DNA of 64,000 nucleotides from Eutreptiella sp. 'Long Island Sound 2002' (lineage: Eukaryota > Protista > Euglenida): positions 187,984,001 through 188,048,000 of the forward strand of contig OZ038378.1 of assembly GCA_964036045.1 (NCBI GenBank), read 5' to 3'. Of the stretch, positions 6,851 through 28,463 are shown in pieces. Position numbers and translations under genes: made by a program. Every line of letters starts with the position of its first letter. The stretch's first letter is position 1. The notes under the pieces were generated by a model. The model saw only the letters and a program-made list of their open reading frames with translations, did no database searches and had not been told where the DNA came from.

Positions 6851-7367
6851 CACTTTGCTCCAACTCCACAATATGTCAGAGCACCCAGGGGAAAACCTGT
6901 GAGTTGGTGTCCCGCACGCGTGAGCGGAGCAGGCTGAGGCCCAAAAACCCTGAAACGCCGAAAAGTTCGGCCTCGGTACTCAAAAATATGGTCACCTATC
7001 CCCCCCCAACCCATACATTTCTGAAACGGCCTTTTCTCACAGATTTCAAAAAGCATTCACATACCCCCCCCCCCCCCCCCAAGGTAACGACATTTTGGTG
7101 CATTGGACTAAAAGTTGAGAAAAACCGGGAAAAATGTGAATTTGCTCCGTGTTGGCATAAACCGAATGTCCCAGAGAGATATGGGTTGTGCCTGTGTGTT
7201 GATGCGTACACTTGTTGGGGCAAGACTTGTGTATGACGCTCAGTAGATGCCACATTTGTGCACTTTGAACACGGGGATTTGGTGTTCTGTCGTACTCCGT
7301 AGGGATGGTTTTGGGGTTGATTTCGCTGGTGGGGTCGCAGGGTTTTATTCTAGTTCCTCGCCAAATG

Positions 7368-7382
7368 TTTTTTTTTTTGCAG
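7368..7382 (+). promoter_or_regulatory. Splice acceptor (T11-GCAG) 3 nt upstream of ATG; candidate spliced-leader trans-splice site
   Basis: TTTTTTTTTTTGCAG|GACATG. Cis versus trans splicing cannot be resolved from DNA alone. Confidence 0.6.
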
Positions 7383-7385
7383 GAC

Positions 7386-9014
7386 ATGGCAGTCCGCTAC
7401 TGGAACTTAGTGCTCCTTCTGTTTGCTGTGACCTCCAGTGGCCATGCACCCGTGCGGCTGGATCCTGCCACCAACGTTTTGCATGGCAAGTTGGAGGTGC
7501 GGTGCACAGTGTCGGACTGCCCGAGGATGGCACAAATGCATGGGACCAAAGCGGTCACGGCGCAGCGCCGAACGCTGGTTCGGGGGAGCTTTTGGGCGGA
7601 CCCATTGCGCTCTGCAGTGCACGCACACCCAATCCCCAAGGCCCAACGAACACTTCCGTCACCGATACATTCGATCGCTGTTCTGCTGGATTGGCTGCTG
7701 CTTGTGGCTGGTCTGAGCGTCGTTGCTTTGCTGGCACGCCGCCTTCGGAGGCGGCGTGCTGTGGAGGCCGACGGCATGGCTTTCTATTGTGACGTTGAGG
7801 CCGAGCAGGGGCTCCTTGCCCTCGACGCCAGCCCGATTGCCCTTTTTGCTGCCTCTGGAAACCCGTCGCCTGATGCACATGGCAAAGGCAAGGGGCAGGG
7901 CAAGGGGCAGGGCAAGGGGCGGGGCAAGGGGCGGGGCAAGGGGCAGGGCAAGGGCAGGCGGAAGGGGCAGGGGCAGGGAAGAGGCGGCCGTGGCGTGGCT
8001 GTGGAGAAGAAGGTGGACGGGCCCATTTCCTCTGGAGCCCTCAGAACCCTCAACAGAGAGATCACGGCGGTGCAGGGCTTCTTTCACAACTACTTCCCGG
8101 TCCGCAAGGGAGGGTTCCCCATGACGTCCGGCAACCGGGACGACCGCAGTCAAGTCCTCGCTCTCGATATCGAGACGTTGCGCGTGGAGGGCAATGACCG
8201 CTGCCCGTCCCGTGTGTCGCTGGTGTCGTTGACAGGAGGCGTGCTTCTGGATGAGTTCGTGCAGCCCCCGGCCCCGGTCGTGCAGTACGGGCTGCTCAGT
8301 GGCATCACAGAGGAGCAGGTCATGGGGGCCGAGCTGACGCTGGTGGAGGTGCAGGAGAGGGTGCGGCAGCTGGTGAGCAGGGACGATTGGCTGGTGGGCC
8401 ACGCGCTCCACTGGGACCTGCAGTACATCGAACTCCAGCACCCCATCAAGAAGGTCATCGACACGGACCACCTCTTCCGCCTCCCGTCCATCCCGGGCCG
8501 CTCCTTCCCGCTGAGGGACGTCCACGAGACTGTGCTGGGGCAGTCCATCGACGCGCACGACAGCGTGTGTGACGCCGAGGCGTGTCTGGCATTGCTCTTG
8601 GATGTGGCCGACAAGCAGTCGGCTGGTGCCCGAGGCCCTTGGCTGCCGGACCTGCCTCCCGTGGCCGGCCGCACGCTCTACGTCGGGGGGATTCCGCTGG
8701 GCGCCGAGGCTGACGTCGTTACGTCCCTGCTCCCAGCGGACGTGCCGTTCCGGTTGCTATATCCTGGGCTGCCCCCGGATGTCGAAAGTGACCTCGATCC
8801 CCTCCGCTTTGATCCGGGGAAGCAGAAGGGCAGGACACGGGTTCTCTTCCAGTGCCGGGAGCATGCGTGGCGAGCCTTCAAACAGCTCCCGGAGGGAGAT
8901 GGCCTGTCTTACAGTGCGTTCTCTGGCGACTGCAGCCGCTCCATCCCGCTGGGCTCGGACCCGGACAACGTGCTGAGGTTCACAATCATAAGCCTGCACC
9001 CCCCAAAGTTGTAG
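7386..9014 (+). CDS. DEDDh 3'-5' exoribonuclease (REXO1/SDN-like) with C-terminal RRM-like domain and tripartite N-terminal targeting leader, 542 aa, intronless
   Basis: ExoI LALDIET, ExoII LVGHALHWDL, ExoIII HDSVCDAEA. RRM-like TLYVGGIP...KGRTRVLF..REHAWRAFKQL. N-terminal hydrophobic signal, second TM helix (aa 97-117) followed by RRLRRRR, and GKG repeats at aa 166-203. The ATG at 7386 is preferred over the track start at 7305. Confidence 0.88.
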   Translation: MAVRYWNLVLLLFAVTSSGHAPVRLDPATNVLHGKLEVRCTVSDCPRMAQMHGTKAVTAQRRTLVRGSFWADPLRSAVHAHPIPKAQRTLPSPIHSIAVLLDWLLLVAGLSVVALLARRLRRRRAVEADGMAFYCDVEAEQGLLALDASPIALFAASGNPSPDAHGKGKGQGKGQGKGRGKGRGKGQGKGRRKGQGQGRGGRGVAVEKKVDGPISSGALRTLNREITAVQGFFHNYFPVRKGGFPMTSGNRDDRSQVLALDIETLRVEGNDRCPSRVSLVSLTGGVLLDEFVQPPAPVVQYGLLSGITEEQVMGAELTLVEVQERVRQLVSRDDWLVGHALHWDLQYIELQHPIKKVIDTDHLFRLPSIPGRSFPLRDVHETVLGQSIDAHDSVCDAEACLALLLDVADKQSAGARGPWLPDLPPVAGRTLYVGGIPLGAEADVVTSLLPADVPFRLLYPGLPPDVESDLDPLRFDPGKQKGRTRVLFQCREHAWRAFKQLPEGDGLSYSAFSGDCSRSIPLGSDPDNVLRFTIISLHPPKL

Positions 9015-10654
9015 GACCGCACCTCTGAGGAAAGGAGGGGGCTTGTGCAGATCGGCAGCGGGGAATTGGGTCCTCTGGGGAGCTGCTGTGCCATGTTGGG
9101 TTTTGGCAGACACATCTTTAAGCGGATCCGGCTCTGTCTGCCCACACCACACGCTCTGTTCCCTTGAGTTTGTGCTGCGGTAACGGAGGACAGCAGTTTG
9201 TGTGTACAAACTGTTTTTCAGCAAACGTTCAAGGAAAACTGACTTGGATTTTTGTACAAAAATTGTTGTACTACATTTTGCGAAGTTTTACCAAATGCCC
9301 GTACCCCATTCCCTGCTCCCCTGGTCCATAAACACACCTCAACACACCTCATGCCCTGCAGCTTCTGTCCACACCACATGCCCCGGTGTTTTGGGACCAC
9401 GACAAGGATACAATCTGTCCTTCAAGAAACGCTCTTTTTCTTGGTGACGGGCAGCACCTCCAATTGCTGCAGGCGTGTGTGTGTGGTACTGCCAGCTGGT
9501 TCACTGTCCTGAGGTGGTGCAACCCCTCGCTTTTGTCTTGGCCCCTTTGAAACCAAATCCCTCAGTGGTATCTAGGCTACATTTCTGCACAGGAGAGGGA
9601 TGTCAGTACAAATTTGGAGATTATCTTTTAAAATGGGGGTAAACTTGGGGTGAGTCCCGGAGCTTCGTGGCCGCATCCAACACAGACTGCTGCTGCAGGG
9701 GTGCACAGGTTTGCTTCGTGGCCAGGCAAATGGTCAGGCAAACAGGGAAATGAGCAGTGCCAGCCAAGGTACTAGTGAAAGGTCGGTTGGCAAGGCAAAC
9801 AATCAGTTGGCCGATGAACGTCCATTGGTTCGGGTGACAGCCCCATCCCTCGGGGTCCCGGTCCGTCCATCTCCTTCACAATACGGGCCTCAACAAGCAT
9901 GTCAGCTTGCTTTGCAATCCCTGCTGACAGATTTCGTTGCAGCAGAGCTTAGCGATGGAACGGGCTGGGCTGATGTGAGGAGGACAACACGCAGGAACTA
10001 ATTGGCTTGAGCTGACAGTCATCCTGTCTACTTCAGCATTACCGGCAGCCTATTCCAAGAGCAGGAGGTTGGGTATTTCCTCACCCACCCCTGCCCGCCA
10101 AAATTGGGTTTGGGATGCACTGACTTTGCTCAGTTTAACTGATGCTAGACCAAAAAATGCTTTTGATTGTTGATACAGCCTGTACCACACACCCCCAATC
10201 ACAATGTCAATCCATTGCCACTCACTGCTGCTTGCATGCAGTGGTGCTGAGCAGAAAATCAGGAGACAGAAATCTTGAGCCTCCTAAGGAAACACCCTTG
10301 TCGTTGACCGACGTACAACGCAACATGTGTGTCACCGCCGCTTACATGCACGTGTATCATGTGGGAGCAAGAAGTGCAACAAGTGGCCATGGTCATGGCA
10401 CAAATGTCGCCAAAATTTGTCCAGCTGTGCCATGCAGCCCAATGTTACATCAGGGTGAAATCTCAATACCATTGAAAAATGCAGCTCTTGCCCTCAAAGT
10501 GCCCCACTGTGTAACAAAGCACACAGATGTTTGCACAGAAATTGTCCTAGAAACCACTGATAGCGAGAAGGGGGTGCAAAAAGAGGAACCTCGCCCCCAT
10601 GCCCGCAGGGTGTGGACTCTACAGGCACAGCATACTGTATACAGCATTCCATAA

Positions 10655-10855
10655 CTGTTGTAAGACGGGGCGTCTTACAAAATCTAAGACACATGTAAGA
10701 CGCATGTAAGACGCATGTAAGACGGATGTAAGACGGATGTAAGACGCATGTAAGACGGATGTAAGACGCATGTAAGATGCCCCGTCTTAGATTATCTAAG
10801 ACGGGGCGTCTTAGATTATCTAAGACGCCCCGTCTTAGATTTTCTAAGACGGGGC
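10655..10855. repeat. Left TIR plus subterminal array of 11-bp (GTAAGACG[C/G]AT) and 24-bp palindromic (TAAGAC-N5-GTCTTAGATT[T/A]TC) units
   Basis: Read directly from the sequence. Confidence 0.95.
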
Positions 10856-11234
10856 TTCTGGTACTTGGAATGTGTATTGCAGTGTGTGATGGATTGAACG
10901 AATAATCCAATAGTAATAGAATGAAAAATATGAAAAAGAGAGGTGTGTAGGACGGGTTGGTCATATAGATCTAATACCATGCAAATCCTAAAGATTTGCG
11001 TAAATAATCAATTCCCGGCACAAGGTGTTATTGTCCGCAAAAAAAATGTGTAAAAAATTAATTATTGGCTTCATGCCTTACGCAAAAATGGGTTCCCGGA
11101 AAAAAAAACGTAAAAATGAAATATTTTTTTCTGCTGCCCCCCTTTTTGCAAGAATGCCAGAATCGTGGGAGAGTTTGCCCCACTGCTTGTTGTCCCCCTC
11201 TTCCGTGTCTCATGCCCCATTCTGCACGTTGCGC

Positions 11235-11366
11235 CCAATCCAATCCCATCCAATCCAATCCCATCCAATCCAATCCCATCCAATCCAATCCAATCCAACC
11301 CATCCAATCCAATCCCATCCAATCCAATCCCATCCAATCCAATCCAATCCAATCCAATCCAAATCC
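11235..11366. repeat. (CCAAT/CCCAT)n 5-bp microsatellite inside the KDZ element
   Basis: About 130 bp of CCAATCCAATCCCAT reiterations. Confidence 0.95.
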
Positions 11367-11557
11367 TTAACCGGGCCCTCTTCTGCGAAGGTGGTTGCAA
11401 ACAGGGAAGGTTAGGGAAGGTATGCCTGTTTTTCTCTTGTAGGTTTCGTTTGGCGAGAGCGAACCGTTTATGTGATCAGCAGTAGTTTATTGCAGCGAAA
11501 GTGAAAATCGGACGCAGTATGAAAACAAACGCAAATAAGGTTGGTTTAACAAAAATA

Positions 11558-11805
11558 CTCTCCCTTCCAAAAACCGGGCAAGCGACCTGGGGCCTAGCCA
11601 CAGGGTGGCAGGTGACTGTCAAGCAAGATATTGCTTTGTGGTAAGTAGGATATCGTGCTCTCCCTTTCAAAAACCGGGCAAGCGACCTGGGGCCTAGCCA
11701 CAGGGTGGCAGGTGACAGTCAAACAAGATATTGGTTTGTGGTAAGTAGGATATGCTCTCCCCTCCCAACCCTGGGCGACAGACCTGGGGCCCAGCCACTG
11801 GGTGG
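11558..11805. repeat. ~100-bp tandem repeat, about 2.5 copies
   Basis: CTCTCCCTT..AAAAACCGGGCAAGCGACCTGGGGCCTAGCCACAGGGTGGCAGGTGAC.. starts at 11558, 11658 and (diverged) 11755. Confidence 0.9.
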
Positions 11806-12402
11806 CGGGTATGCGGCCTATCGTGTTTGAGGAATGGATGCAACTCGCCGGTGCCACGTGGTGCTGACGAGTTGCCGGTATGGTAAAAAGCAGAAACCTG
11901 CCGGGCGAGGGTTTCGGCTGGGAGGGAAAAACAGCCCAATCCACCAAACCAAGGACGGTCGGCTCATCCCCCCACATAGGCAACAGCCCCCGTGGGCCTT
12001 GTGGTCCCCGTGTGGCTTCACAATCATGGTCCGGCCACGGCGCTTGCAGGGGTTGAGCGTGGGCTCTCCCTGTAGGTGGTCGCGAAAGCACACCCCCCAG
12101 ACCCCAGGCAAAGGCCTATGGCAGATTCCAAAGGGGATCCACCCTTACTCCGTCTCTCGTGGCGGTTGGGTGAGCGGGGCGTCGTGGTGTCGTGCGGCCA
12201 CTACTGAACAGGACAACAAAACTCATAGCACCGCTCATCAGGTGCACAGACAACGAGCTGGGAGACCTGGGTGACGGGGTACAGAACGTTGACGAGGTAT
12301 AGTGACAGAGCAGCACTAGTAAAGATAGGTAGGTGTAGCAGCAAATGTTTTGTTTACTGTTGTTTACTGCTATTTTAGCGCGGCAATTTTCAGCCTAGAA
12401 GC

Positions 12403-12895
12403 AAACCAGGGTTGGCGCCGGGATGGAAACCCGAGGGGTCAACAATGCCTATGGCGGCTCTGGTTTGTTTCTGCGAAACAGCAATCTCTCTTTGCGGCAC
12501 TGATGCCGTGAAGTTAAGACTGCCCCTTAGCGCCCTGCATTGGCTATGCAAGAGCGAATTGTCAAGCCGTGTCGTCAGGTGAGTCTGGTATATGAGGTAC
12601 TGGTACCCCGGGGAAACAAAACAGGGTTGGCGCCGGGATGGAAACCCTGAGGGTCAACAATGCCTAAGGCGGCTCTGTTTTGTTTCAGTGAAACGCGGTC
12701 TTTTTTTTACGGTGCCACCGCCGTGAATCTAAGATCGCCCTGCATTGGCACTGTAGGTGCGACTTGTTTGCCCTGTCTTGTCTGGTGTGTGGTGATTGAT
12801 TGGGGTACTGGTACCCCCACAAAACAAACCAGGGTTGGCGCCGGGATGGAAACCCTGAGGGTCAACAATGCCTAAGGCGGCTCTGTTTTGTTTTT
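12403..12895. repeat. Three spaced copies of a ~65-bp repeat
   Basis: CAGGGTTGGCGCCGGGATGGAAACCC..AGGGTCAACAATGCCTA.GGCGGCTCTG near 12403, 12618 and 12826. Confidence 0.9.
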
Positions 12896-13125
12896 ACGAA
12901 ACTCTTTCTTGTCATGGGGTAAACAAAACGCGACCACAGGGTTGGCTTGCCAGGCTGTGCGCGCAACATACCCCCCTTGCGCAAGCACGCTGAAAGTTAG
13001 CAAAACGACGGTAACACAGGCTCATGTGCTTAGACGAGGCCGTGCTTGCGCGCGACGCGCGGTACCAAAAGAAGGTATGTCACCGGAAACCTGCCCATAC
13101 CTCACCCTAAGCACAATTGTCGCCA

Positions 13126-13211
13126 CAGGGCACTACAACACAATGTGCAGGCAAATTTCAGCGAGTTCTGGAGGTCCTCACTGCCCATCAGGGCCATCAG
13201 GAGCTGTGGAA
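13126..13211. repeat. Diverged dispersed repeat, inverted partner at 50456-50541
   Basis: CAGGGCACTACAACACAA...GTCCTCA.TGCCC.TCA..GCCATCA.GAGC is shared with the reverse complement of 50456-50541. Confidence 0.65.
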
Positions 13212-13734
13212 TAGAAGCCCTTTCCCACCTTGCGCCTCATCTTGAACAATTGCACATGCTTGCTAACAGCTATGCCAGGTGTAGCAACATGAGCCATGGC
13301 TGAAAATCACATTAACAGGGACATCATTGGGTTGCAATTGCAAGCAGAATGTTGGTATGAGCACGAAGAACTACCACAAGCATGATCAAGCCCCCCTTTT
13401 CCCTCTACAAGCGAAGCACAATCGCATAATGTTACATTTCCGACCATAAAAACCGTGGTCAGAAAATTCCACCAAAACGACGGTAACACGTGCTCATGTG
13501 CTAAGACAAGGCAGTGCTTGCGCAAGGGGGGGGGGGGGGTAGGAGTCAGAACCCCTTGGGCTCTGGACTAGGGGTCCTAACCAAGGGTCTTGTCCCCAAG
13601 GCGTGTTGGTGCTTGTCTGTGCTATGGACTGCAATCGCACACTGCAACTTATCCAGATTTGTATGCCTATGTAGGAATGGACTGCAATCCCAGAGTCCAT
13701 TTTTGGAGGGAAAACAGGCGGATACAAGTGCAAT

Positions 13735-13945
13735 TCTTCACCCCCCACTATCTCTGTAGGTCCCCCTGCGAGGGGGGACCTTGTCAAATTTCCTTCACCC
13801 CCCACTATCTCTGCAGGTCCCCCTACGGGGGGGACCTTGTTAGGGAGTTACAGGTGAAATTCTTTACTCCCCACTGTCTAGGTAGTTACAGGTGAAATTC
13901 TTCACTCCCCACTGTCTGTGCAAGTCCCCCTGCGAGGGGGGACCC
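13735..13945. repeat. ~55-bp repeat units carrying a GC hairpin
   Basis: GTCCCCC-TGCGA/TACGG-GGGGGGAC stems at 13758, 13815 and 13924. Confidence 0.8.
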
Positions 13946-14920
13946 TATCAGGCAGTTACAGGTCAACATACCCCTTAAGCCCCTCCCCCTTGCTCTCGAC
14001 CCCTTCCCCGACCTCCGGTGCCTTTGGCACCAGCCATTCCCAATCAAGGAAACAAACAAAAGTCTGTTAAACACAAGGGGGCCACTGGCAACACCGCTTT
14101 CGCAAATTTTATTTTTTCTTTTTTGGGGACTGTCTCTTTCAATGTTAAACCGGTGCAGTCTGATGGCTAGGTGCCTGGGCAGGCAGGTTTCACCTTCTTG
14201 CCCTACAGGGGGGGGAGGAGAGGACGCCCAGGCACCCAAGGGGTCCAAGAGAGCATGGTGGGATATAAAAATAAAAACCTGTAAGTTCCTCTCCTGCCCT
14301 CCCCGCCAGGGCCACCCCCGCCTTGTTTGCCCCCAGCCTTCGGGTTCCACACATTCAGTGACTTTAACGAGTCAGGATGTTGAAGACTTTAAAATTTTTT
14401 GTGGTGTGTATGTGTTAGGATTCACATGGTTCATTACTCAGGAATTGCACGCAGCCCCTCCTGTTTTGCACTCTTTTGTGACGGCTTTGTAAAGGAATTC
14501 GTTAGGGAAAACCTCAGCATAGGCCACAGAGGACAGACTCATTGACCTGCAGCACTGTCGAAACCCCCTCTCCCCTGCGGTGTTGTGTTGTGACGTTGTG
14601 CCAACGTGTGTTCTGCAGAGTTCCAAATTTGTGTGTTGCATGTCAGCATGTATTAGCAAGAAGTATTGACAAGAAGGGTGAAAGGAAGGAAGAGAATACT
14701 TCCAGCAAAGTACATGGATGCAAGCAGTTGTAAAGAAGAGATTAGAACAGGAGAAGGGAACAACACCACATAATAGAATGGGATGTTGCTGATGTGAAAG
14801 TGGACACGGCAGAAGTCATGGTGCAGCCACTGTTGCTGTGCACCCTGCTACAGGGTGCACTTGTGTTGCTTTGTGACGATGTTGTACACTCTTGCCTTTC
14901 ATAGTAAACTACTACATTGA

Positions 14921-15277
14921 TTGTGCCATGCTTGTTATCCTGTACAGGAGCACTATATGTCTGCATTTTAGCGTTGTGAGGGCTGCTTGTGGCCTTTGGA
15001 TGCTGCAGGCTGGTACACAAAGGGGCGATGGCACTGTGCTCCTTGTGGTTGCCCGTTCAAGAATGATGGATCTTGCCCCCGTTGCAACCAAGTAGTGTGG
15101 GACAACAATTTACAATACTACGTTCCACTCTTGCAAGACACACAGGAAGACATGGTGGCGGCAAACGTGTTGGACTCTGGGTTCGACAGTGGGTGGGATG
15201 CCCCATCTCTACAATGGTCACCGACACCACCACCTTCGTTCCGGGAGTTTGAGTCTTCCTCGGACTCCGATTTTTGA
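14921..15277 (+). other. Cys-rich reading frame (CHAC, CEGC, CAPC, CPRC); possible 5' exon/CxC domain of the KDZ transposase or an accessory zinc-ribbon ORF
   Basis: Four CxxC pairs in one frame, with a single TAG at 14969-14971 that also reads as an acceptor (TTTTAG|). Confidence 0.4.
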
Positions 15278-15726
15278 GAGGGTCCTGAATGCCGTTTCCA
15301 TGAAGACTGGCACACGGTGTTTTTCAACACCACTGATTGCCCCATTTGGTGGGGCCATTTGAAATTGTGCTGTGTGTCTTTTCGTAGTTGTTGCACAGGC
15401 AATTGATTGACGTTTGGAGGCCTAGGTACTCTACCCCCCCCCCCCCGGGGGGGTCTGCGTGCTATTTTTTGGGATTTTGGGTGCCCTCCGGTAACCCCCC
15501 CCCCCCGTGTTCGGGGCAAAAATTTACCACTGTACGGGCCACTGTGCGGGGCGGACCTTTTTTGGTAGAAAACCCTCAGCAGGGCATTGTGTGGTGACCC
15601 CAATCACCAAAATATGTTCAGAATCTATACCACCAATAAGCCAGATGTCAGCAGAGACATGTCATACCTGAGTTGGTATATGCATGTGCTCACAGCTGAG
15701 GGGTCATGGGTTCAATACCCACATCC

Positions 15727-15937
15727 GGCACCTTTTTTGGCGCTTTTTCTGGCGCTTTTTCTGGCGCTTCTGGCGCTTTTTCTGGAGCTTCTGGCGCTTT
15801 CTCTGGCGTTTTTTCAGTATTACAAGTGCACATGACATGCATTGGACACAATCACAAACAACCCGGAACCTTTTCTGACGCTGTTTTCTGCGCTTCTGGC
15901 GCTTTTTCTGGCACTTCGGGCGCTTTTGTGGCGCTTT
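15727..15937. repeat. Degenerate (TTTTCTGGCGC)n tandem repeat, two blocks, just upstream of the transposase ORF
   Basis: Read directly from the sequence; the first block ends in TTTTTTCAG (possible acceptor). Confidence 0.85.
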
Positions 15938-15944
15938 TACGGCA

Positions 15945-18638
15945 TTGTACGGCTACGACACAGTAACAGTGGGTGAGGGTGAGGACGAGGAGGTGTACAG
16001 GTTGTCACTTCCGAGAGATCACATTGTAGTGGCACGCAATGTGTTTGGCCGCCCATATGTCCATGCGTTACAGCAGCGCATAGTATTGCAGTTTGCAAGC
16101 TTCAAGGCAGAGGGTGGTGTCAAGGAAGTACCGCGCACCAAACTCCAAGAGGTTGTTTTCTTGGATTGGTGCATGCCGTACTACCGTGAGGCGCGAGGGC
16201 AGGCCCTTTTTAGGTGCCCAGATTTGCACACTGTTGTCTCAGAGGTGACAGGGTTCCTTCGTCTCAATGGCTTGCCCAGTAAACATCATCAGTGCTCTGC
16301 ATGTGAGCCCGCTCATCTCAATCACATTCGCGGTATGCCAACGGTACGCCCAAACATAAAACGACATACAGCAGAGGTATATGATAGGTGTGTCGTCGTG
16401 GATTGCATTTCAAAGGTGTGCAGACGGGTTTGCATGTACTGTATTCGGCAGAATAAGCGTGACCCGACAACTGGCCTGCACATACAAGCACAGTGTCGCA
16501 AAGCACCCGTGCCTAGTACGTGCTTCTGTAAAGAACATTCCACCCCTGGGCACGTGGTGTACACACAGGTGCTTGAAGGTGATGATGGCAGTGATGTCAT
16601 GGAGGCATTGCCAGAGGCTTCATCAGGGGACTCTGAGCATGAAACTACAGATGCCTATAGTACTGCACAGGAGGAGGAAACTGCTGTGTCACGGAGTGCG
16701 CAGCCCACATTGGACACAGAATACACATCTATGCTCCATGAAATTGCTCTTTTTCAGGCTACAGGTGCCACCTGCACTCCAAGCGCAACAACAACGCAAC
16801 GGTCACGGCAACAGCCACCACACACGGCAGCAGGGCGGGGGCGGGGAAAGGGTGGTCACCAAGTGGGTGCAAAGCAAAAAATGCGCCGCAAGACAGTGTG
16901 GTCCGTTTTTGCTCAAGGATGCAAAAAGAAGGTTGTCGTTTTCACTGGGTTCACCAATGGTTTGATGACAGTGTCTCGCCCTTGTACAGTTGTTGTGCAT
17001 TTCGACGAGATGGTGGGAGCTGAGGGGTCCCACCAAATTTTGTACAATTTGTGGTCTATCGTGACCCGCCACAGAACAGGCGGAATTTCTTTTGATTGGA
17101 TTTTGTTTGATTATGCATGCAGGCTTTCGCAAACATCTGCCAAATACAACGTGCTGTCTGATGTGCAGTGCGTGTTGGACCGATTTCATGGTACCGTGCA
17201 TAAATGTCAAGGGTACGGGATGTCACAATTCCCAGAGTTGTCGCGCGTGAACAGCTCAGCGGCTGAACAAGGCAACAGTACGACAGGTCGCTATAGGTTT
17301 GCTGCTAACCACAGGGACGCGGACACTTTTTATTTTTACATGGCCAACTGCTTGGAGGGCCGCAACAGGTACATCATTGGTGGCCATAAGGCATCTGCTA
17401 TAACCGCGTTGGGAGGTTTGCAACTAGTCGAAGGAGTACATGATGATGAAGACCCAACGTCGTGGGTCGTAGATGTTGCACCACTTGCAGGCTCTGGCCA
17501 ATTTTGCACTTTTGTGGCCCGCCTAGCCAAATTGTACCACCTTCGAGCTACGTGGGCTGCAGACCCGTCTTATGTCCCCTTTAATCCCTTCTCCGCTTTT
17601 GCTCATAGGGACAGTGTGAGGAATGTGCCAGCCCTCAATCCGCATACCCATGGTTCTGCGCGTAGTACTTCCAGTATCGTGGCGCGGACACCTGCCGCAT
17701 CTGCTGCATCTACCGTTTGCACAACTGCAACATTTGGTAGCCCTGCAGTGACTACATCCAGTGCTACTGCACCATCTGCTGCACGTGTGGTGAATCCCAC
17801 CTCTGTGCCCATGGAGACCATTTCTGTCAGTAGCGATGATGATATTTCGACAGCCCCAGTGCAGGACCCTGCAGTCCTAGGATTGTTGAAGACTGAGCCT
17901 GGTGACAATGTCCCTCCTTCCCTGGGCACAGGTGCTTCCGCTGACGTGCTGCAGGACCCCTTTTCCACTGCACAGGACGTGTCTACATCCCCCCCTGTTG
18001 ATCCCTATGCACGCAGCCCAAGGTTGTCTCCCCATGCATCATTGGATGACATTTCTTTTGGTGAGGATGATGCTTTGATGGCTGCAATGGAGGACACAGA
18101 CCCAGAGGTCCTTCGTCATTTCCTTCGGCATAACTACACTCTACTTGGAGATGTGGACCGGGGTCATTTCACAAGAACACAGCAGCCTATTCCTCTACAA
18201 TCCGGTGTATGGGACTACGCGGCCCAGCCTGAAGCATTTCGGGCCCTCTTGGCCCCACCCTTTGGCATGCAACAAGTACACAGTAAGCCCAACATGCTCC
18301 AATTGCTGCAGAAGGTGAAAGGGAAACAACTTTTTTCTGTGCGCAGACTATGGTCCACCCTATTTGCAAATAGGAAGCACCCCCCCTCCATGTCACAATT
18401 CAAGGCCATGCTTGTCCATATCCACCAGGCACATTTGGTACTGCTTGTGATCGTGGGTGCCAGGGCCAGATCATGCGCATGTCTCATGCTGCCTGCCCCC
18501 TGCCCTGCCCCTGCTATTCTTGTTCAGAACAACATTACGGTGGAGGAGTGGGATGCACGTTGCTCTGCGGATTGCTTGTACTCCGTGGCATTTGACCAAA
18601 GTTCAGTGCCTAAGCCACCACCTCGGAGGCGGCGGTAA
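15945..18638 (+). CDS. KDZ-family transposase (897-codon ORF; true start uncertain, probably spliced)
   Basis: Candidate catalytic D (VVVDC, 16401), FDYACRL (17106), LDRFHGTVHKC, and VNSSAAEQGNS (E at 17265), plus TNGLMTVSRPC and a CxxC...CxCxxH finger. This is the motif series typical of KDZ transposases. C-terminal PPPRRRR is a candidate NLS. The track start is TTG, not ATG. Confidence 0.85.
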   Translation: MYGYDTVTVGEGEDEEVYRLSLPRDHIVVARNVFGRPYVHALQQRIVLQFASFKAEGGVKEVPRTKLQEVVFLDWCMPYYREARGQALFRCPDLHTVVSEVTGFLRLNGLPSKHHQCSACEPAHLNHIRGMPTVRPNIKRHTAEVYDRCVVVDCISKVCRRVCMYCIRQNKRDPTTGLHIQAQCRKAPVPSTCFCKEHSTPGHVVYTQVLEGDDGSDVMEALPEASSGDSEHETTDAYSTAQEEETAVSRSAQPTLDTEYTSMLHEIALFQATGATCTPSATTTQRSRQQPPHTAAGRGRGKGGHQVGAKQKMRRKTVWSVFAQGCKKKVVVFTGFTNGLMTVSRPCTVVVHFDEMVGAEGSHQILYNLWSIVTRHRTGGISFDWILFDYACRLSQTSAKYNVLSDVQCVLDRFHGTVHKCQGYGMSQFPELSRVNSSAAEQGNSTTGRYRFAANHRDADTFYFYMANCLEGRNRYIIGGHKASAITALGGLQLVEGVHDDEDPTSWVVDVAPLAGSGQFCTFVARLAKLYHLRATWAADPSYVPFNPFSAFAHRDSVRNVPALNPHTHGSARSTSSIVARTPAASAASTVCTTATFGSPAVTTSSATAPSAARVVNPTSVPMETISVSSDDDISTAPVQDPAVLGLLKTEPGDNVPPSLGTGASADVLQDPFSTAQDVSTSPPVDPYARSPRLSPHASLDDISFGEDDALMAAMEDTDPEVLRHFLRHNYTLLGDVDRGHFTRTQQPIPLQSGVWDYAAQPEAFRALLAPPFGMQQVHSKPNMLQLLQKVKGKQLFSVRRLWSTLFANRKHPPSMSQFKAMLVHIHQAHLVLLVIVGARARSCACLMLPAPCPAPAILVQNNITVEEWDARCSADCLYSVAFDQSSVPKPPPRRRR

Positions 18639-18763
18639 ATGAACCATGCCAACTTGGCAGCCCCGAAGCAATGGCAGAACATTTGGCATGGACCGGATTT
18701 CTGTTCGTCAGTGGTGCTTTGCTGCCTTTTTGTGTCTCACACATTAGGGACAGGATGCTTGAT

Positions 18764-19300
18764 TGCCATATGCATCTATGCCCAAACTGCTGTGTTGTTA
18801 CTCCAAAATGATTTGTTGCAAAATGGGTGCAGAATTCAACAACAACACCCAGCTCTAACAATTGGGCCTAGGGGTCTCCCACCTCAGTACCCTACAGGGC
18901 AATCGAGGCTTAACCTCTGAAATCGGATGATACCACGGGACATCCTCAGAGTATGGCTGCTTCTGCCATCAGAAGGGAGACGATGCTTCAGTGCCATATG
19001 CATCTATGCCCAAACTGCTTGGTTGTTACTCCCTGCAAAATGGGTGCAGAATTAAACAACAACACCCAGCTTCAACAATTGGGCCTGGGGGCCTCCCACC
19101 TCAGTACCCCATAGGACAAACGAGGCTTAACCCCTGAAATCGGATGGTACCCGGGACATACTCAGAGTATGCCTGCTACTGCCACCATAAGGGAGACGAT
19201 GCTTCAGTGCCATATGCATCTATGCCCAAACTGCTTGGTTGTTACCCCAAATGATTGGTTGAAAAATGGGTGCAGAATCAAACAACAACACCCACCTGCA
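18764..19300. repeat. ~220-bp tandem repeat, about 2.4 copies
   Basis: TGCCATATGCATCTATGCCCAAACTGCT starts at 18764, 18992 and 19208. Confidence 0.9.
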
Positions 19301-19542
19301 ATTGTATTGGGTGGGGTCGGGGGGGGGGGGGGGGGCTCCCAAGGGACTAGTACACAACCGGCTTATGTAGTTTCTCACCCTATACAGGTGAAAAAACGAA
19401 ATTTCCGAAACTGATTTTTTTGATATCCCGGCCACTCACAATGACCATCCAAGCTGTGTAAAGCATGTTTTGAGTAGCATTTAGGTGTTTTCCACCCTAT
19501 TTGGGTATTGAGTGTGTTTTGGGGGGCATCCCATCTACAGTT

Positions 19543-19863
19543 TGTAGACACTGTCTGCCCCAAGTGTCTGCCCCAAGTAGACGCGGCCTGCTAATTGTAG
19601 ACACCGTGGGCATGTTGTAGACGCGAAGTGCCAATATTAGGGAAGGGGGCCGAAGGCCCCCTTCCCCACCAAACGGTCCGCTGGCAGCGTTCACCCGCAC
19701 ACACAGGCATGGTGTTCTGGTCTGTAGACACTGCCTGCCCCAAGTAAACGCGGCCTGCTAATTGTAGACACCGTGGGCATGTTGTAGACGCGAAGTGCCA
19801 ATATTAGGGTAGGGGCCGAAGGCCCTCTTCCCCACCAAACGGTCCGCTGGCAGCGTTCACCCG
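19543..19863. repeat. 180-bp tandem repeat, 2 copies
   Basis: TGTAGACACTG.CTGCCCCAAGT...GGTCCGCTGGCAGCGTTCACCCG at 19543 and 19723. Confidence 0.9.
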
Positions 19864-19977
19864 GCGCAGGTAGGGTGTTCGGTAGTTTGTGGTTTGTTTC
19901 CTACATTTGTATTATGTCCTGATCTTGTCCACTCCATCAGCTTTTTGAATGAAAAAAAACTGCACCTGTACTTACTC

Positions 19978-20298
19978 TAAGACACCCCGTTCTTATTAAT
20001 ATAAGAGGCCCCGTCTTAGATAATCTAAGACGCCCCGTCTTAGATTTTCTAAGACGCCCCGTCTTAGGTTTCTAAGACGCCCCGTCTTAGATCATCTAAG
20101 ATGCCCCGTCTTAGATTATCTAAGACGCCCCGTCTTAGATTTTCTAAGACGCCCCGTCTTAGATTTTCTAAGACGCCCCGTCTTACATAATCTAAGACGG
20201 ATGTAAGACGCATGTAAGACGCATGTAAGACGGATGTAAGACGGATGTAAGACGGATGTAAGACGCCTCCGAATCTAAGACACCCCGTCTTACAACAG
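19978..20298. repeat. Right subterminal array plus TIR of the KDZ element
   Basis: Repeated TAAGACGCCCCGTCTTAGATTTTC units, then GTAAGACG[C/G]AT units, ending TAAGACACCCCGTCTTACAACAG. Confidence 0.95.
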
Positions 20299-20401
20299 CT
20301 CTTGATCAGGATTTGGTGTTCTGTCGTACTCCGTAGGGATGGTTTTGGGGTTGATTTCGCTGGTGGGGTCGCAGGGTTTTATTCTAGTTCCTCGCCAAAT
20401 G

Positions 20402-20417
20402 TTTTTTTTTTTTGCAG
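20402..20417 (+). promoter_or_regulatory. Splice acceptor (T12-GCAG) upstream of the second exonuclease copy
   Basis: Same as 7368-7382 with one extra T. Confidence 0.6.
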
Positions 20418-20420
20418 GAC

Positions 20421-22049
20421 ATGGCAGTCCGCTACTGGAACTTAGTGCTCCTTCTGTTTGCTGTGACCTCCAGTGGCCATGCACCCGTGCGGCTGGATCC
20501 TGCCACCAACGTTTTGCATGGCAAGTTGGAGGTGCGGTGCACAGTGTCGGACTGCCCGAGGATGGCACAAATGCATGGGACCAAAGCGGTCACGGCGCAG
20601 CGCCGAACGCTGGTTCGGGGGAGCTTTTGGGCGGACCCATTGCGCTCTGCAGTGCACGCACACCCAATCCCCAAGGCCCAACGAACACTTCCGTCACCGA
20701 TACATTCGATCGCTGTTCTGCTGGATTGGCTGCTGCTTGTGGCTGGTCTGAGCGTCGTTGCTTTGCTGGCACGCCGCCTTCGGAGGCGGCGTGCTGTGGA
20801 GGCCGACGGCATGGCTTTCTATTGTGACGTTGAGGCCGAGCAGGGGCTCCTTGCCCTCGACGCCAGCCCGATTGCCCTTTTTGCTGCCTCTGGAAACCCG
20901 TCGCCTGATGCACATGGCAAAGGCAAGGGGCAGGGCAAGGGGCAGGGCAAGGGGCGGGGCAAGGGGCGGGGCAAGGGGCAGGGCAAGGGCAGGCGGAAGG
21001 GGCAGGGGCAGGGAAGAGGCGGCCGTGGCGTGGCTGTGGAGAAGAAGGTGGACGGGCCCATTTCCTCTGGAGCCCTCAGAACCCTCAACAGAGAGATCAC
21101 GGCGGTGCAGGGCTTCTTTCACAACTACTTCCCGGTCCGCAAGGGAGGGTTCCCCATGACGTCCGGCAACCGGGACGACCGCAGTCAAGTCCTCGCTCTC
21201 GATATCGAGACGTTGCGCGTGGAGGGCAATGACCGCTGCCCGTCCCGTGTGTCGCTGGTGTCGTTGACAGGAGGCGTGCTTCTGGATGAGTTCGTGCAGC
21301 CCCCGGCCCCGGTCGTGCAGTACGGGCTGCTCAGTGGCATCACAGAGGAGCAGGTCATGGGGGCCGAGCTGACGCTGGTGGAGGTGCAGGAGAGGGTGCG
21401 GCAGCTGGTGAGCAGGGACGATTGGCTGGTGGGCCACGCGCTCCACTGGGACCTGCAGTACATCGAACTCCAGCACCCCATCAAGAAGGTCATCGACACG
21501 GACCACCTCTTCCGCCTCCCGTCCATCCCGGGCCGCTCCTTCCCGCTGAGGGACGTCCACGAGACTGTGCTGGGGCAGTCCATCGACGCGCACGACAGCG
21601 TGTGTGACGCCGAGGCGTGTCTGGCATTGCTCTTGGATGTGGCCGACAAGCAGTCGGCTGGTGCCCGAGGCCCTTGGCTGCCGAACCTGCCTCCCGTGGC
21701 CGGCCGCACGCTCTACGTCGGGGGGATTCCGCTGGGCGCCGAGGCTGACGTCGTTACGTCCCTGCTCCCAGCGGACGTGCCGTTCCGGTTGCTATATCCT
21801 GGGCTGCCCCCGGATGTCGAAAGTGACCTCGATCCCCTCCGCTTTGATCCGGGGAAGCAGAAGGGCAGGACACGGGTTCTCTTCCAGTGCCGGGAGCATG
21901 CGTGGCGAGCCTTCAAACAGCTCCCGGAGGGAGATGGCCTGTCTTACAGTCCGTTCTCTGGCGACTGCAGCCGCTCCATCCCGCTGGGCTCGGACCCGGA
22001 CAACTTGCTGAGGTTCACAATCATAAGCCTGCACCCCCCAAAGTTGTAG
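20421..22049 (+). CDS. Second copy of the DEDDh-RRM exonuclease, 542 aa
   Basis: Identical to copy 1 except D422N, A511P and V529L. Confidence 0.88.
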   Translation: MAVRYWNLVLLLFAVTSSGHAPVRLDPATNVLHGKLEVRCTVSDCPRMAQMHGTKAVTAQRRTLVRGSFWADPLRSAVHAHPIPKAQRTLPSPIHSIAVLLDWLLLVAGLSVVALLARRLRRRRAVEADGMAFYCDVEAEQGLLALDASPIALFAASGNPSPDAHGKGKGQGKGQGKGRGKGRGKGQGKGRRKGQGQGRGGRGVAVEKKVDGPISSGALRTLNREITAVQGFFHNYFPVRKGGFPMTSGNRDDRSQVLALDIETLRVEGNDRCPSRVSLVSLTGGVLLDEFVQPPAPVVQYGLLSGITEEQVMGAELTLVEVQERVRQLVSRDDWLVGHALHWDLQYIELQHPIKKVIDTDHLFRLPSIPGRSFPLRDVHETVLGQSIDAHDSVCDAEACLALLLDVADKQSAGARGPWLPNLPPVAGRTLYVGGIPLGAEADVVTSLLPADVPFRLLYPGLPPDVESDLDPLRFDPGKQKGRTRVLFQCREHAWRAFKQLPEGDGLSYSPFSGDCSRSIPLGSDPDNLLRFTIISLHPPKL

Positions 22050-25000
22050 GACCGCACCTCTGAGGAAAGGAGGGGGCTTGTGCAGATCGACAGCGGGGAA
22101 TTGGGTCCTCTGGGGAGCTGCTGTGCCATGTTGGGTTTTGGCAGACACATCTTTAAGCGGATCCGGCTCTGTCTGCCCACACCACACGCTCTGTTCCCTT
22201 GAGTTTGTGCTGCGGTAACGGAGGACAGCAGTTTGTGTGTACAAACTGTTTTTCAGCAAACGTTCAAGGAAAACTGACTTGGATTTTTGTACAAAAATTG
22301 TTGTACTACATTTTGCGAAGTTTTACCAAATGCCCGTACCCCATTCCCTGCTCCCCTGGTCCATAAACACACCTCAACACACCTCATGCCCTGCAGCTTC
22401 TGTCCACACCACATGCCCCGGTGTTTTGGGACCACGACAAGGATACAATCTGTCCTTCAAGAAACGCTCTTTTTCTTGGTGACGGGCAGCACCTCCAATT
22501 GCTGCAGGCGTGTGTGTGTGGTACTGCCAGCTGGTTCACTGTCCTGAGGTGGTGCAACCCCTCGCTTTTGTCTTGGCCCCTTTGAAACCAAATCCCTCAG
22601 TGGTATCTAGGCTACATTTCTGCACAGGAGAGGGATGTCAGTACAAATTTGGAGATTATCTTTTAAAATGGGGGTAAACTTGGGGTGAGTCCCGGAGCTT
22701 CGTGGCCGCATCCAACACAGACTGCTGCTGCAGGGGTGCACAGGTTTGCTTCGTGGCCAGGCAAATGGTCAGGCAAACAGGGAAATGAGCAGTGCCAGCC
22801 AAGGTACTAGTGAAAGGTCGGTTGGCAAGGCAAACAATCAGTTGGCCGATGAACGTCCATTGGTTCGGGTGACAGCCCCATCCCTCGGGGTCCCGGTCCG
22901 TCCATCTCCTTCACAATACGGGCCTCAACAAGCATGTCAGCAATCCCTGCTGACAGATTTCGTTGCAGCAGAGCTTAGCGATGGAACGGGCTGGGCTGAT
23001 GTGAGGAGGACAACACGCAGGAACTAATTGGCTTGAGCTGACAGTCATCCTGTCTACTTCAGCATTACCGGCAGCCTATTCCAAGAGCAGGAGGTTGGGT
23101 ATTTCCTCACCCACCCCTGCCCGCCAAAATTGGGTTTGGGATGCACTGACTTTGCTCAGTTTAACTGATGCTAGACCAAAAAATGCTTTTGATTGTTGAT
23201 ACAGCCTGTACCACACACCCCCAATCACAATGTCAATCCATTGCCACTCACTGCTGCTTGCATGCAGTGGTGCTGAGCAGAAAATCAGGAGACAGAAATC
23301 TTGAGCCTCCTAAGGAAACACCCTTGTCGTTGACCGACGTACAACGCAACATGTGTGTCACCGCCGCTTACATGCACGTGTATCATGTGGGAGCAAGAAG
23401 TGCAACAAGTGGCCATGGTCATGGCACAAATGTCGCCAAAATTTGTCCAGCTGTGCCATGCAGCCCAATGTTACATCAGGGTGAAATCTCAATACCATTG
23501 AAAAATGCAGCTCTTGCCCTCAAAGTGCCCCACTGTGTAACAAAGCACACAGATGTTTGCACAGAAATTGTCCTAGAAACCACTGATAGCGAGAAGGGGG
23601 TGCAAAAAGAGGAACCTCGCCCCCATGCCCGCAGGGTGTGGACTCTACAGGCACAGCATACTGTATACAGCATTCATAACTAGAGTAGTCAAGCAACAAG
23701 AGGGAAACATTTTGGTTGCAGGTAAAAAAACATTCCTTCTGGTCCATCATCTTCTGGTGGTTCAATTTCAATCACACTCCTCATCCACACCGCTGGCACC
23801 TTTTGGGGGTATTTCCTGCACTCCTTGACAGGTTGTTGGAACCCACTTCCCTTCAGCTCTTTCACAAAAACATCGTTGCTTCATGACATGGCAACACTAT
23901 GCATGTGCATTGCAACCCTCATTGTTGGTGATTGGTGGCCCCAGCCTACTCTTGGGGCTCTCCGCTCGCCACAAAGCTTAATTGTGGCCATTGGTTGGGG
24001 GATAAGGATAATAGCTTAAAAAGGGCTCAGATCAGTGGTGTCCAACCAAGATGATGATAAACAAGCCTGGCAATACCCAAAATGACGCCTACAGTGCTAT
24101 CCTTGGGTGCGTCCCTTCACGTTATGTGCACTGCATGGGCACAGCATCCAGTAAATGAATGCCACCATGCTCAGCCAATGATTTTGCCCTGTCCCCCCCC
24201 CCCCCCCCTTGGTACTCGCAGTCGCTAACGCCACTCACAGCCCCGCACGAGGCGGCGATGCCCAGCACACCGCCGGTAACACAGTCGTACACCCCAGTTA
24301 AAACGCCATCAGGACGCCCAACCCCCCTCTCACCACTGTGGGATATCGAGGTGTGTACACCGGTGCAAATCAAAAAGAAACAACGCCAGGCCACACCAGG
24401 ATCCACACTCCAGTGGTCGGCGGTACGCGGCCCGTTGCCTAATCACACGGAGGCCACGCCAGCCACAAGCCGGCGAACGAGCACGCCCTACCGTGTGGGA
24501 CCAGCGAGAACCACGTTCCACACGCCACAATCCCTGTCACCCATGTCCCCCCGAGTGTCCCTGCAGCTGCTAGCATCGTTGGAGCTGGTGGCAATGGAGG
24601 GCGAAGAACCCCTGTCCCCCCGGAAGGAACTGAACTATGAGACTTCGTCACAGGAGCCCCACTCGGATGCATCCGCGCCGGGCTCCCCCTCCACGGCTTC
24701 AACGATGTCATGCAGCACTGAAGGGTCACGATGCCTTACCCCCTGAGTGTTGAATGTTGAATGTCTTTGACCTTAACCGATCCTGTACCCACTGGGTTTT
24801 TCAACCTAAGGCCCCAGCAAAGCCCGACCTAGTGTGGCCGAATGGGGCCAGCTACAGCAGCACCACGGGAAGGGAGTGACCTTTGACCTGGATGCACGCA
24901 TAACCCTGTAGAGCCCAGGAAGCGAATGCAGCGAGCGGACACAGGGACGAGGGATGAACTGCTGAACAGACCTCGAGCTGAGGCTCCGCCGAACATTGGC

Positions 25001-25289
25001 AGATTGGACAGATGGCGATGACAGCTGTGGGGCAGGCGCAGCCAGAGCCAAATGCGGACACTGCAACCTGACCATTTGAGGCCCGTAGTACTCGCCCTTG
25101 CATCTGGGGGGGGCGAGGGAACCGTCACTTTCTGTTTTGCAAGTTTACACAGAAGGTTGGATATTGAGCTTCTCGGGCGCATTTGCTGGCTAGCCAAGGT
25201 GGTATTATTGGTGCATCTGTGCACTTCAGGTTTCTTGCATCCAAGGCACCCCACGTACCCTGTATGATGCAGAACACTTCTGTTTCTCG

Positions 25290-25480
25290 TAATTTCAGTC
25301 ATGGATTAAGCAGAAAGATAAGGCGAGATGGAACAAAAGCTTTGTGCATGGATAGTAGCACAAAGGAACAACCGTGTCATCGTGACCAAGAACATGTGCT
25401 TGGCTTTGGCCAGGAAATGGGGCAGTGCATCAGACATTGAGATTATGTGGGCCAAGAGTGCACCTGGTGTCTGGGGACCG
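25290..25480 (+). pseudogene. pogo/Tigger (CENP-B/Tc5-type HTH) transposase remnant
   Basis: SWIKQKDK followed, in another frame, by MEQKLCAWIVAQRNNRVIVTKNMCLALARKW, matching the Tc5 HTH pattern E..L..WI..QR....VT......A. No DDE domain or TIRs found. Confidence 0.5.
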
Positions 25481-28460: not shown

Positions 28461-28463
28461 TCC

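Follow-up and report, generated by a model that had tools for sequence, protein, structure and literature searches.

A KDZ-type transposon without a target site duplication between tandem copies of an exonuclease gene in Eutreptiella

We analysed a window of 64,000 nucleotides from the euglenid Eutreptiella sp. 'Long Island Sound 2002' (contig OZ038378.1, positions 187,984,001 to 188,048,000 of the forward strand); the coordinates given here are those of this whole stretch, which is free of gaps (N count 0). Along the contig the locus comprises a left flank (X), one copy of a 3.4-kb segment (A), a transposon, the five bases GATCA, a second copy of the segment (A') and a right flank (Y). Copy A (7275-10649, plus strand, 3375 bp) and copy A' (20309-23675, plus strand, 3367 bp) both have AGCATTC as their final bases. 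BLAST and global alignment of 7275-10656 with 20309-23681 gave 99.56% identity over 3383 columns, and the A-transposon-A' arrangement described in an earlier note on this DNA is borne out with corrected coordinates. The global alignment contains four substitutions and three indels: a run of 11 or 12 T at 7368/20402, a 9-bp deletion in A' that is flanked by GC and lies opposite 9905-9913 of A, and a single base at 10649. Apart from the indels, the two copies differ by 0.12% at the level of substitutions. An assembly-wide search placed DNA specific to A at two sites in the 2.28-Gb assembly, both inside the window. The left flank carries a high-copy dispersed repeat (6900-7185) that lies outside the duplication; the 40 that were scored, of about 2400 first-look candidates, are 90-94% identical to it, over query positions 1-283. 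The best reading of this arrangement is that a 3.4-kb segment holding one gene was truly duplicated in tandem.

The gene in A is an intact open reading frame of 542 codons (7386-9014, plus strand; gene call P0052, 542 aa) with matches to SDN1/ISG20-type DEDDh 3'-5' exonucleases (PDB 5z9x, E 3.3e-19; ISG20, E 7e-7) and a weak Pfam match to RNase_T. The encoded protein is a predicted RNA-trimming enzyme with an N-terminal hydrophobic leader and a low-complexity (GKGQ)n stretch, and an acceptor-like T11-GCAG tract lies 5' of the reading frame. A' contains a second intact exonuclease reading frame (20421-22049, plus strand) whose product carries the substitutions D423N, A512P and V530L relative to that of the first.

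The transposon between the copies is a KDZ-type DNA element of 9654 bp on the plus strand (10650-20303), with termini set from about 30 copies of its family. Its outer sequence runs from CATAACTGTTG at the left to CAACAGCTCTT at the right; the left terminus is CATAACTGTTGTAAGACGGGG and the right terminus is CCCCGTCTTACAACAGCTCTT. The earlier note had placed the element at 10655-20298. The terminal inverted repeats on which that placement relied are real, but in some 30 other copies the conserved termini extend beyond it by 5 bp at either end, and a 16-nt inverted repeat is set 5 bp inward of each family terminus. Left ends of the family begin with CA and right ends finish in …CAGCCCTC or …CAGCTCTC, that is, in …CCCTC. 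Among 36 right ends compared, the last base is T in the window element and C in all 35 others. The motif TAAGACG/CGTCTTA occurs 15 times in the left subterminal region (10650-10900, plus strand; about 60 per kb) and 22 times in the right one (19950-20303, plus strand), of which the final T is the last base. A scan of 1-10649 and 20304-30000 found neither this motif nor the terminal motifs in X, A, A' or Y, and the locus therefore holds no second or third copy of the element. The nearest sibling element differs from it by 0.7-2%. Taken together with the 0.12% divergence and the real indels between A and A', this indicates that the event is recent and that the repeat is not a trivial artefact of identical sequence.

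The longest open stretch of the element's transposase gene (15945-18638, plus strand) spans 897 codons and has, by homology searches, a KDZ core (…FDYACRL…DRFHGTVHKC…) at about 17100-17600. Pfam searches with E values up to 10 returned no family, and hence no PF18758, for either the 897-aa reading frame or its 1082-aa sibling P0002, and a word-indexed homolog search with the transposase returned the element's own family alone. The assignment to KDZ made in the earlier note is upheld through remote homology only. A phmmer search of 1.8 billion representatives matched P0041, P0045 and P0047 at query residues 406-553, and these three proteins exceed the Pfam cut-off for KDZ. Profile alignment of the family with KDZ-bearing homologs in hhalign gave a probability of 99.9% and an E value of 2.7e-35, PF18758 being present in 6 of the 8 target proteins. 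Catalytic-core homology to KDZ transposases (YDNAC…DRFH…H..C motifs) is thus found by way of remote homologs, and in a protein atlas the cluster nearest to the transposase is KDZ (0.93). Its atlas neighbours carry CxC5/CxC6 and its N-terminal part is Cys-rich by eye; the query has no Pfam match to CxC, and a remote homolog, P0039, has a weak match to CxC4. Judged by remote homology, the transposase is a divergent KDZ enzyme.

A survey of other family copies for the length of the target site duplication (TSD) showed a 7-bp duplication in all 29 pairs examined, 27 of them perfect and 2 matching at 6 of 7 positions, and not the 8 bp that had been expected from Zisupton-type elements. The window element is the sole paired copy without such a duplication, being flanked by AGCATTC on the left and GATCAGG on the right. 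The earlier observations that the TSD is missing and that the flanks form no direct repeat thus hold for the corrected flanks and against 29 control copies that all have one. Given the 7-bp rule and the corrected termini, the missing TSD is a real exception and not a boundary error. Zisupton and Dileera elements have TSDs of 8 bp and Kyakuja elements of 7 bp (PMC12730594, citing Böhne et al. 2012 for Zisupton). The euglenid family shares the KDZ transposase class, cut-and-paste transposition and terminal inverted repeats with Zisupton, and a KDZ-type core, a 7-bp TSD and the CA start with Kyakuja. In TSD length and CA start it therefore resembles Kyakuja and not Zisupton. However, the fungal Kyakuja elements have CA..TG termini and no terminal inverted repeats (PMC12730594), whereas the euglenid family has a …CCCTC end, a 16-nt inverted repeat and dense subterminal repeats, and it is missed by the Pfam KDZ model.

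The junctions of the locus provide the main evidence on how the duplication arose. The left joint is exact, with A stopping at 10649 and the element beginning at 10650. At the right joint the element stops at 20303 and the start of A' is 20309, which moves to 20304 if the bases GATCA (20304-20308, plus strand) belong to the original flank. With corrected termini, the 10-bp filler claimed earlier shrinks to these 5 bp, which are either untemplated filler or the first part of the original 7-bp target of the element, GATCAGG. At the outer left junction (J1; 7265-7276, plus strand, from alignment), X is joined to A as …TTTGAACACGG/GGATTTGG, a possible excision footprint. Of GATCAGG the start of A retains just GG plus a relic, GAACACGG, the 8-mer immediately 5' of A, which lies within two edits of the right-flank GATCAGG (null P 0.041, post hoc). 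J1 may accordingly be read as a weakly recognisable excision footprint, with GAACACGGGG as the candidate remnant of GATCAGG/GATCAGG. At the end of A', AGCATTC occurs once, matching expectation for an unduplicated target. The first six bases of Y, ATAACT (23676-23681, plus strand), equal bases 2-7 of the left terminus of the element (single-site chance 2.6e-4, post hoc). Target-site mimicry, in which the family would favour targets similar to its own left terminus, was considered for this identity and dropped: a strict prefix was found in 2 of 29 copies (P 0.015), and a broader comparison by identity did not reach significance (P 0.06-0.12).

We lean modestly towards the view that the transposon's own ends produced the tandem gene duplication by a reaction of the hybrid-element or sister-chromatid type. 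After replication, or between homologs, the left end on one chromatid would be used together with the right end on the other, and the transposase would then insert this hybrid element at a nearby site. The products would be one chromatid with the order segment-element-segment and one with the matching deletion, the latter having been lost. In the sub-variant we favour, the element would originally have been located just 5' of the gene at the target GATCAGG, so that the present right junction would be the original one; the left end would next have been joined precisely behind AGCATTC, 3.4 kb downstream, and the old donor site would have been repaired, leaving a footprint at 7267-7276. In this reconstruction we infer that transposase and not recombination made the novel joint, which of the two ends is new, and that two chromatids were involved. 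The use of hybrid ends is supported by the left end abutting A exactly while only GATCA (5 bp) separates the right end from A', by the TSD that is present in all 29 other pairs and missing here, by the single AGCATTC at the end of A', as for an unduplicated target, and by the presence of one element at the locus and of the segment nowhere else in the assembly. The favoured sub-variant is further supported by the 8-mer 5' of A that falls within two edits of GATCAGG (P 0.04) and by the terminal C-to-T change, which, from the sequence, appears to fall in a CpG formed with the flank. Two observations count against the hybrid-end reading: one of the two junctions departs from a clean strand-transfer joint, and the identity between the first 6 nt of Y and the left terminus of the element is not predicted. 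The imperfect junction could be either the right one, as GATCA filler of 5 bp after a right end minus its last base, or a heavily edited X/A footprint of 10 nt where 14 are expected, with internal changes. We know of no work on how KDZ elements excise and what footprints they leave, nor on the chemistry of their transposases.

An alternative route that we regard as unlikely has two steps. The element would be excised from X/A with the J1 footprint and reinserted, on one homolog or chromatid, 3.4 kb away behind AGCATTC; unequal homologous recombination of this new copy with the old X/A copy on the other homolog would then give X-A-TE-A'-Y and a deletion. All its steps are ordinary, a local hop followed by mitotic crossing-over inside the 9.6 kb of identical sequence, and its four junctions match those of the favoured model exactly. 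Since descent would make the two element copies identical, the one-step and two-step routes look alike in sequence. The two-step route, however, assumes that a single locus underwent two rare events and passed through a heterozygous intermediate, and the J1 footprint on which it depends is weakly recognisable (P 0.04). Two other loci of the family with Left-Left-Right ends (C24:15430732-15453540 and C6:128087288-128105787) are also explicable under recombination, and we set them aside as independent proof of aberrant transposition since nested self-insertion followed by recombinational collapse fits them equally well. End-joining is a poorer candidate still: an element end freed by transposase or another break would be joined by NHEJ or MMEJ to a second break on a sister or homolog, either as a right end minus its last base plus the filler TGATCA or as a left end annealed through CATAACT microhomology. 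It accords with the untemplated GATCA, the palindromic TGATCA, the right terminal T found in just 1 of 36 ends, and the match of ATAACT in Y plus its preceding C to the first 7 nt of the element. Yet a second, independent break would have had to fall at exactly the required position, annealing through the microhomology would leave one C less than the sequence shows at 10649/10650, and with a sister chromatid a second element copy would be expected at A'/Y, where there is none.

Assembly error is an unlikely cause of the structure. The specific form in which two haplotypes, with and without the insertion or with different insertion sites, were strung in tandem appears very improbable, although the divergence between A and A' could be allelic and the structure is known from assembled sequence. 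A mis-join would not place both novel joints on the true termini or no more than 5 bp from them; a simple heterozygous insertion would require AGCATTC and Y to follow the right end, which they do not; merged insertions from two haplotypes predict a pristine GATCAGG at J1, which differs; and the window has no gaps. Two further scenarios were rejected. Insertion into an older tandem duplication needs a 1-in-3400 positional coincidence plus loss of the TSD. Duplication of A together with the element, followed by excision of the second element, would leave a second AGCATTC that is absent from A'/Y. Non-allelic homologous recombination between dispersed elements should leave three copies, at the outer edges and the junction, where one was found; a variant with a heterozygous intermediate may still have acted. 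The proposal of the earlier note that KDZ transposition made the gene duplication is thus retained as the best explanation, with the qualification that the two-step route gives the same structure and that one junction is unclean.

Closely comparable events are known from other transposon systems. In work by Preston et al. in 1996, P-element hybrid insertion is said to have produced direct duplications and deletions beside a single element without a matching TSD. Common to that system and to the reading favoured for this locus are a lone element, the joint use of its ends from sister chromatids or homologs, and insertion at a nearby site. The differences are the transposase (P as against KDZ), the host (a fly as against a euglenid) and the evidence, which here comes from one fixed genomic structure with one imperfect junction and not from events seen de novo. 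Hybrid-element insertion is a defined term for P elements (PMC2775673), and for Drosophila that source and PMC3439972 both cite Gray, Tanaka & Sved 1996 and Preston, Sved & Engels 1996. Alternative transposition of P elements yields flanking rearrangements (PMC3744419). The reversed-ends signature of maize Ac comprises two element copies that each start a repeat, the first with a TSD and the middle one with half (PMC3744419). The maize Ac/Ds case and this locus are alike in having duplication endpoints at transposon termini, a middle element without a matching TSD and the involvement of sister chromatids, which here is inferred; the euglenid locus differs in that its only element lies between the repeats and the outer edge is empty. 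A single element between the copies fits the hybrid-element or sister-chromatid class; the reversed-ends type that the earlier note also drew from maize Ac/Ds needs two element copies and would fit solely if an outer copy had been excised later, as the footprint reading of J1 would allow. Our literature search found no paper tying KDZ, Kyakuja or Zisupton elements to alternative transposition and none tying Euglena to KDZ transposons.

To our knowledge, duplications that transposon ends have generated are documented well for P and hAT elements only. They come mostly from genetic screens and are seldom encountered as fixed genomic structures; a maize study found just three candidates in 7611 hAT insertions (PMC3744419). 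A clean natural case in a distant eukaryote, involving a third superfamily whose biochemistry is unstudied, would demonstrate the generality of the mechanism. The family also provides a first anatomical description of KDZ elements in a euglenid: the termini are asymmetric, the TSD is 7 bp long and arrays of TAAGACG occupy the subterminal regions. As both exonuclease copies are intact and three amino acids apart, the locus is in addition a young gene duplicate, one with a probable mode of birth. More tentatively, KDZ transposases may be able to pair element ends that lie on two chromatids, giving rise to tandem gene duplications, and this family may have done so repeatedly, here and in partial self-duplications at the Left-Left-Right loci on C24 and C6. 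In this genome, gene expression by polycistronic transcription and trans-splicing needs no private promoter, so a duplicate would be functional on arrival. If this reading of repeated duplication is true, a cut-and-paste transposon would directly supply the genome with new gene copies.

The duplicated segment comprises two direct copies, A (7275-10656) and A' (20309-23681), which were recovered by a repeat scan and by BLAST of the region, with 99.56% identity over 3383 columns. Their differences, all listed from a global alignment, are four substitutions (8649, 8916, 8970 and 9055), a T11/T12 length difference (7368/20402), a single differing C at 10649, and a deletion of 9 bp from A' opposite 9905-9913 with GC microhomology at its borders. 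Nowhere in the 2.28-Gb assembly outside this window is there A-specific DNA or either of the A|flank junction regions, so A is not a dispersed repeat; searches with the same sequences found no empty-site haplotig in the assembly. The window contains no N bases. As far as sequence alone can indicate, the structure A-element-A' is real. The earlier note correctly placed the element exactly at the duplication junction, while its coordinates, flanks and 10-bp filler required revision. A dispersed repeat of ~285 bp (6900-7185), probably a SINE-like element, precedes the duplication and stops ~90 bp short of it; this repeat is very abundant, with ~2400 first-look candidates and scored copies that are 90-94% identical.

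Each copy carries an intact exonuclease ORF of 542 codons (7386-9014 in A and 20421-22049 in A'). The best solved relatives of this ORF are Arabidopsis SDN1 (5z9x, E 3e-19) and ISG20, and a public gene call (P0052) is the identical single-exon ORF. The T11/T12 difference belongs to a pyrimidine tract right before GCAG, 7 bases upstream of the ATG, and leaves the frame unbroken, contrary to the indication of a mechanical ORF list. All three ORF substitutions between the copies are non-synonymous (D423N, A512P and V530L), a number too small for a selection test. Only 111 bp of duplicated sequence lies upstream of the ATG. Euglenid mRNAs receive a trans-spliced leader, and given this established knowledge 111 bp may be sufficient for expression of the duplicate. 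Within the ORF, a 12-bp tandem repeat (GGCAAGGGGCAG-like; 7851-8014 and 20886-21049) encodes a low-complexity (GKGQ/GKGR)n linker, the source of Pfam TrAA12/EBNA2 and PDB ribosomal/Sm matches that were dismissed as spurious.

The element occupies 10650-20303, with ends set by the conserved termini of other genomic copies. Both ends contain inverted copies of CTGTTGTAAGACGGGG and dense TAAGACG arrays, whose motifs number 15 in the left 250 bp, 22 in the right 350 bp and one in the 8.9-kb interior, with none elsewhere in the window. Dozens of genomic matches were obtained for each of the left 300 bp and right 349 bp, and at both sides the ends of these copies extend terminus conservation 5 bp past the previously proposed TIR. 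The left end begins with CAGTA, or with CATAA in a sub-family to which the window copy and its 99% sibling (C1:164.44 Mb) belong, and continues with CTGTTGTAAGACGGGG; the right end is CCCCGTCTTACAACAG plus a final CCCTC, which in the sibling reads CTCTC. The two ends are not mutual inverted repeats in their outermost 5 bp. A census of end patterns yielded 57 left and 36 right ends, and a final T instead of C was found only at the right end in the window (1/36). An internal repeat with a ~167-bp unit is present as two units at 19565-19890 and as at least nine in the C24 copy (L023 1-1495).

Using the corrected boundaries, 29 independent left/right end pairs were formed, and these are flanked by a 7-bp direct repeat that is perfect in 27 pairs and matches at 6/7 positions in the other two. 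The element's family thus generates 7-bp target site duplications (TSDs) and not the 8 bp expected for Zisupton-type elements. The window element is flanked by AGCATTC (left) and GATCAGG (right), which have nothing in common, and this control set strengthens the claim that an element without a TSD lies at the duplication junction. The sole sequence between its right terminus and A' is the 5-bp GATCA (20304-20308).

No Pfam match even at E 10 was obtained for the longest ORF of the element (15945-18638, 897 codons) or for the sibling copy's 1082-aa protein (P0002), and a word-indexed homolog search retrieved only these two proteins. Searched exhaustively with phmmer, 1.8 billion representatives yielded 49 proteins, the nearer ones without a Pfam match; three distant proteins (P0041, P0045 and P0047) align at residues 406-553 and exceed the Pfam gathering score for PF18758 (KDZ transposase). 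Alignment of the element-family and distant-protein profiles by hhalign (probability 99.9%, E 2.7e-35) matched the motifs YDNAC(H/R)L … (I)DRFH … H … C, with PF18758 present in 6/8 proteins of the target profile. In a protein atlas, independent of the profile search, the nearest clusters were KDZ, CxC5 and CxC6. Because these lines of evidence agree, the KDZ label of the earlier note is right, and the transposase represents a divergent KDZ branch missed by the Pfam model. Zisupton and Dileera TSDs are 8 bp, and Kyakuja has 7-bp TSDs, CA…TG termini and no TIRs (Kojima, PMC12730594). The element's family shares the 7-bp TSD and CA start with Kyakuja, but has TIRs and another right terminus.

With X and Y denoting the left flank of A and the right flank of A', the four junctions in order are J1 (X|A), …CACTTTGAACACGG|GGATTTGG; J2 (A|element), …ACAGCATTC|CATAACTGTTG; J3 (element|A'), …CAACAGCTCTT|GATCA|GGATTTGG; and J4 (A'|Y), …ACAGCATTC|ATAACTAGAGTAG. 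The best explanation is that the duplication originated from transposon ends. Both ends of a single element, each on a different chromatid, would act together: the original junction persists at one end, a new target is attached to the other, and the old donor flanks are joined together. Such joint use leads to two mirror scenarios. In one, J2 would be original (target AGCATTC), J3 new and J4 the repaired donor site, requiring that the strand-transfer joint contain a filler of 5-6 bp and that the donor site be restored perfectly. In the other, J3 would be original (target GATCAGG), J2 a new precise joint after AGCATTC, J4 the untouched target and J1 the repaired donor site. GATCA would then be original flank and not filler, the terminal C-to-T change would fall in a CpG between the element's last base and this flank, and the only irregular place would be the donor site, where deletions and insertions are a normal outcome of end-joining. 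No more than two edits separate GATCAGG from the 8-mer that precedes A (GAACACGG), a post hoc resemblance reached by 4% of random sites that would argue weakly for an original J3. We prefer the scenario with an original J3 only modestly.

The same junctions arise if the element hopped locally from X|A to A|Y and its new and old copies on homologs then recombined unequally; by sequence, this route is indistinguishable from the one-step model. GATCA and the odd terminal base would also be explained if a cleaved element end was joined to a second break by end-joining, which requires an extra break at the right place. Microhomology joining at J2 is suggested by the presence in J4 of CATAACT, the first 7 nt of the element, but the joint would then have one C fewer than it does. 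Under classical NAHR between dispersed copies, three element copies would be expected; one is present, and neither flank contains element motifs. The probability of an assembly artefact is small, given that the novel joints are located at true element termini and J1 is not a pristine GATCAGG site.

The first bases of Y, ATAACT, are the same as bases 2-7 of the element's left end (single-site chance 2.6e-4). Terminus-mimicking targets in the element's family were nominally positive by a strict test (2/29, P 0.015) and not positive by a broader one (P 0.06-0.12).

Irregular arrangements were also observed among other family copies. A Left-Left-Right layout (loci L023, L024, L015, L021 and L026) occurs at C24:15430732-15453540 (15.43 Mb) and C6:128087288-128105787 (128.09 Mb), where the outer left end has a 7-bp TSD in common with the only right end, and a precise inner left end adjoins element-internal sequence at approximately coordinates 9078 and 7068. 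These loci are partial tandem self-duplications whose joint is formed by a left terminus; transposition of hybrid ends into the element itself and nested self-insertion followed by collapse of adjacent repeats fit equally well. At C6:82346774-82347089 (L004), the left terminus and at least 15 nt of flank are present twice, 295 bp apart, as a small tandem duplication across the element/flank junction. Two right-end-like termini (CAACACCTCTC variant; C1:5067732-5067752 and C1:5074604-5074624) share one orientation and are separated by 6.9 kb; no left end was found near them, and they may represent another irregular arrangement. A full-length 12.2-kb copy with a perfect TSD (CCAACGG) is located at C1:188112161-188124400, ~108 kb downstream on the same chromosome and in the same orientation as the window element. 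Short non-autonomous derivatives of ~150 bp to 1.4 kb occur at C21:39187549-39187705, C8:70550799-70551154, C4:168208444-168209007 and C15:29559444-29560871; perfect 7-bp TSDs were read for the C21, C8 and C15 copies, and the family therefore has MITE-like members. The small unplaced contig C1915 (6001-6021), probably a haplotig or redundant contig, has the same left end and 15-nt flank as C22:10227903-10227923.

Hybrid element insertion reportedly gives rise to direct duplications or deletions next to a lone element (Preston et al. 1996, among the references of PMC3439972). This process of P elements, in which the ends that insert nearby come from sister chromatids or homologs (PMC2775673), is the closest known one. 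Maize reversed-ends duplications have two element copies, one at the start of each repeat (PMC3744419). The single element observed here would match only if an outer copy has since excised; the earlier proposal that a KDZ element made the gene duplication is retained for its origin in transposon ends and not for the maize structure. The literature searched contained no paper tying KDZ elements to hybrid-end-type events, and none connecting Euglena with KDZ transposons. The mechanism is of a known class, and the novelty lies in the superfamily, the host and a first description of the element's family.
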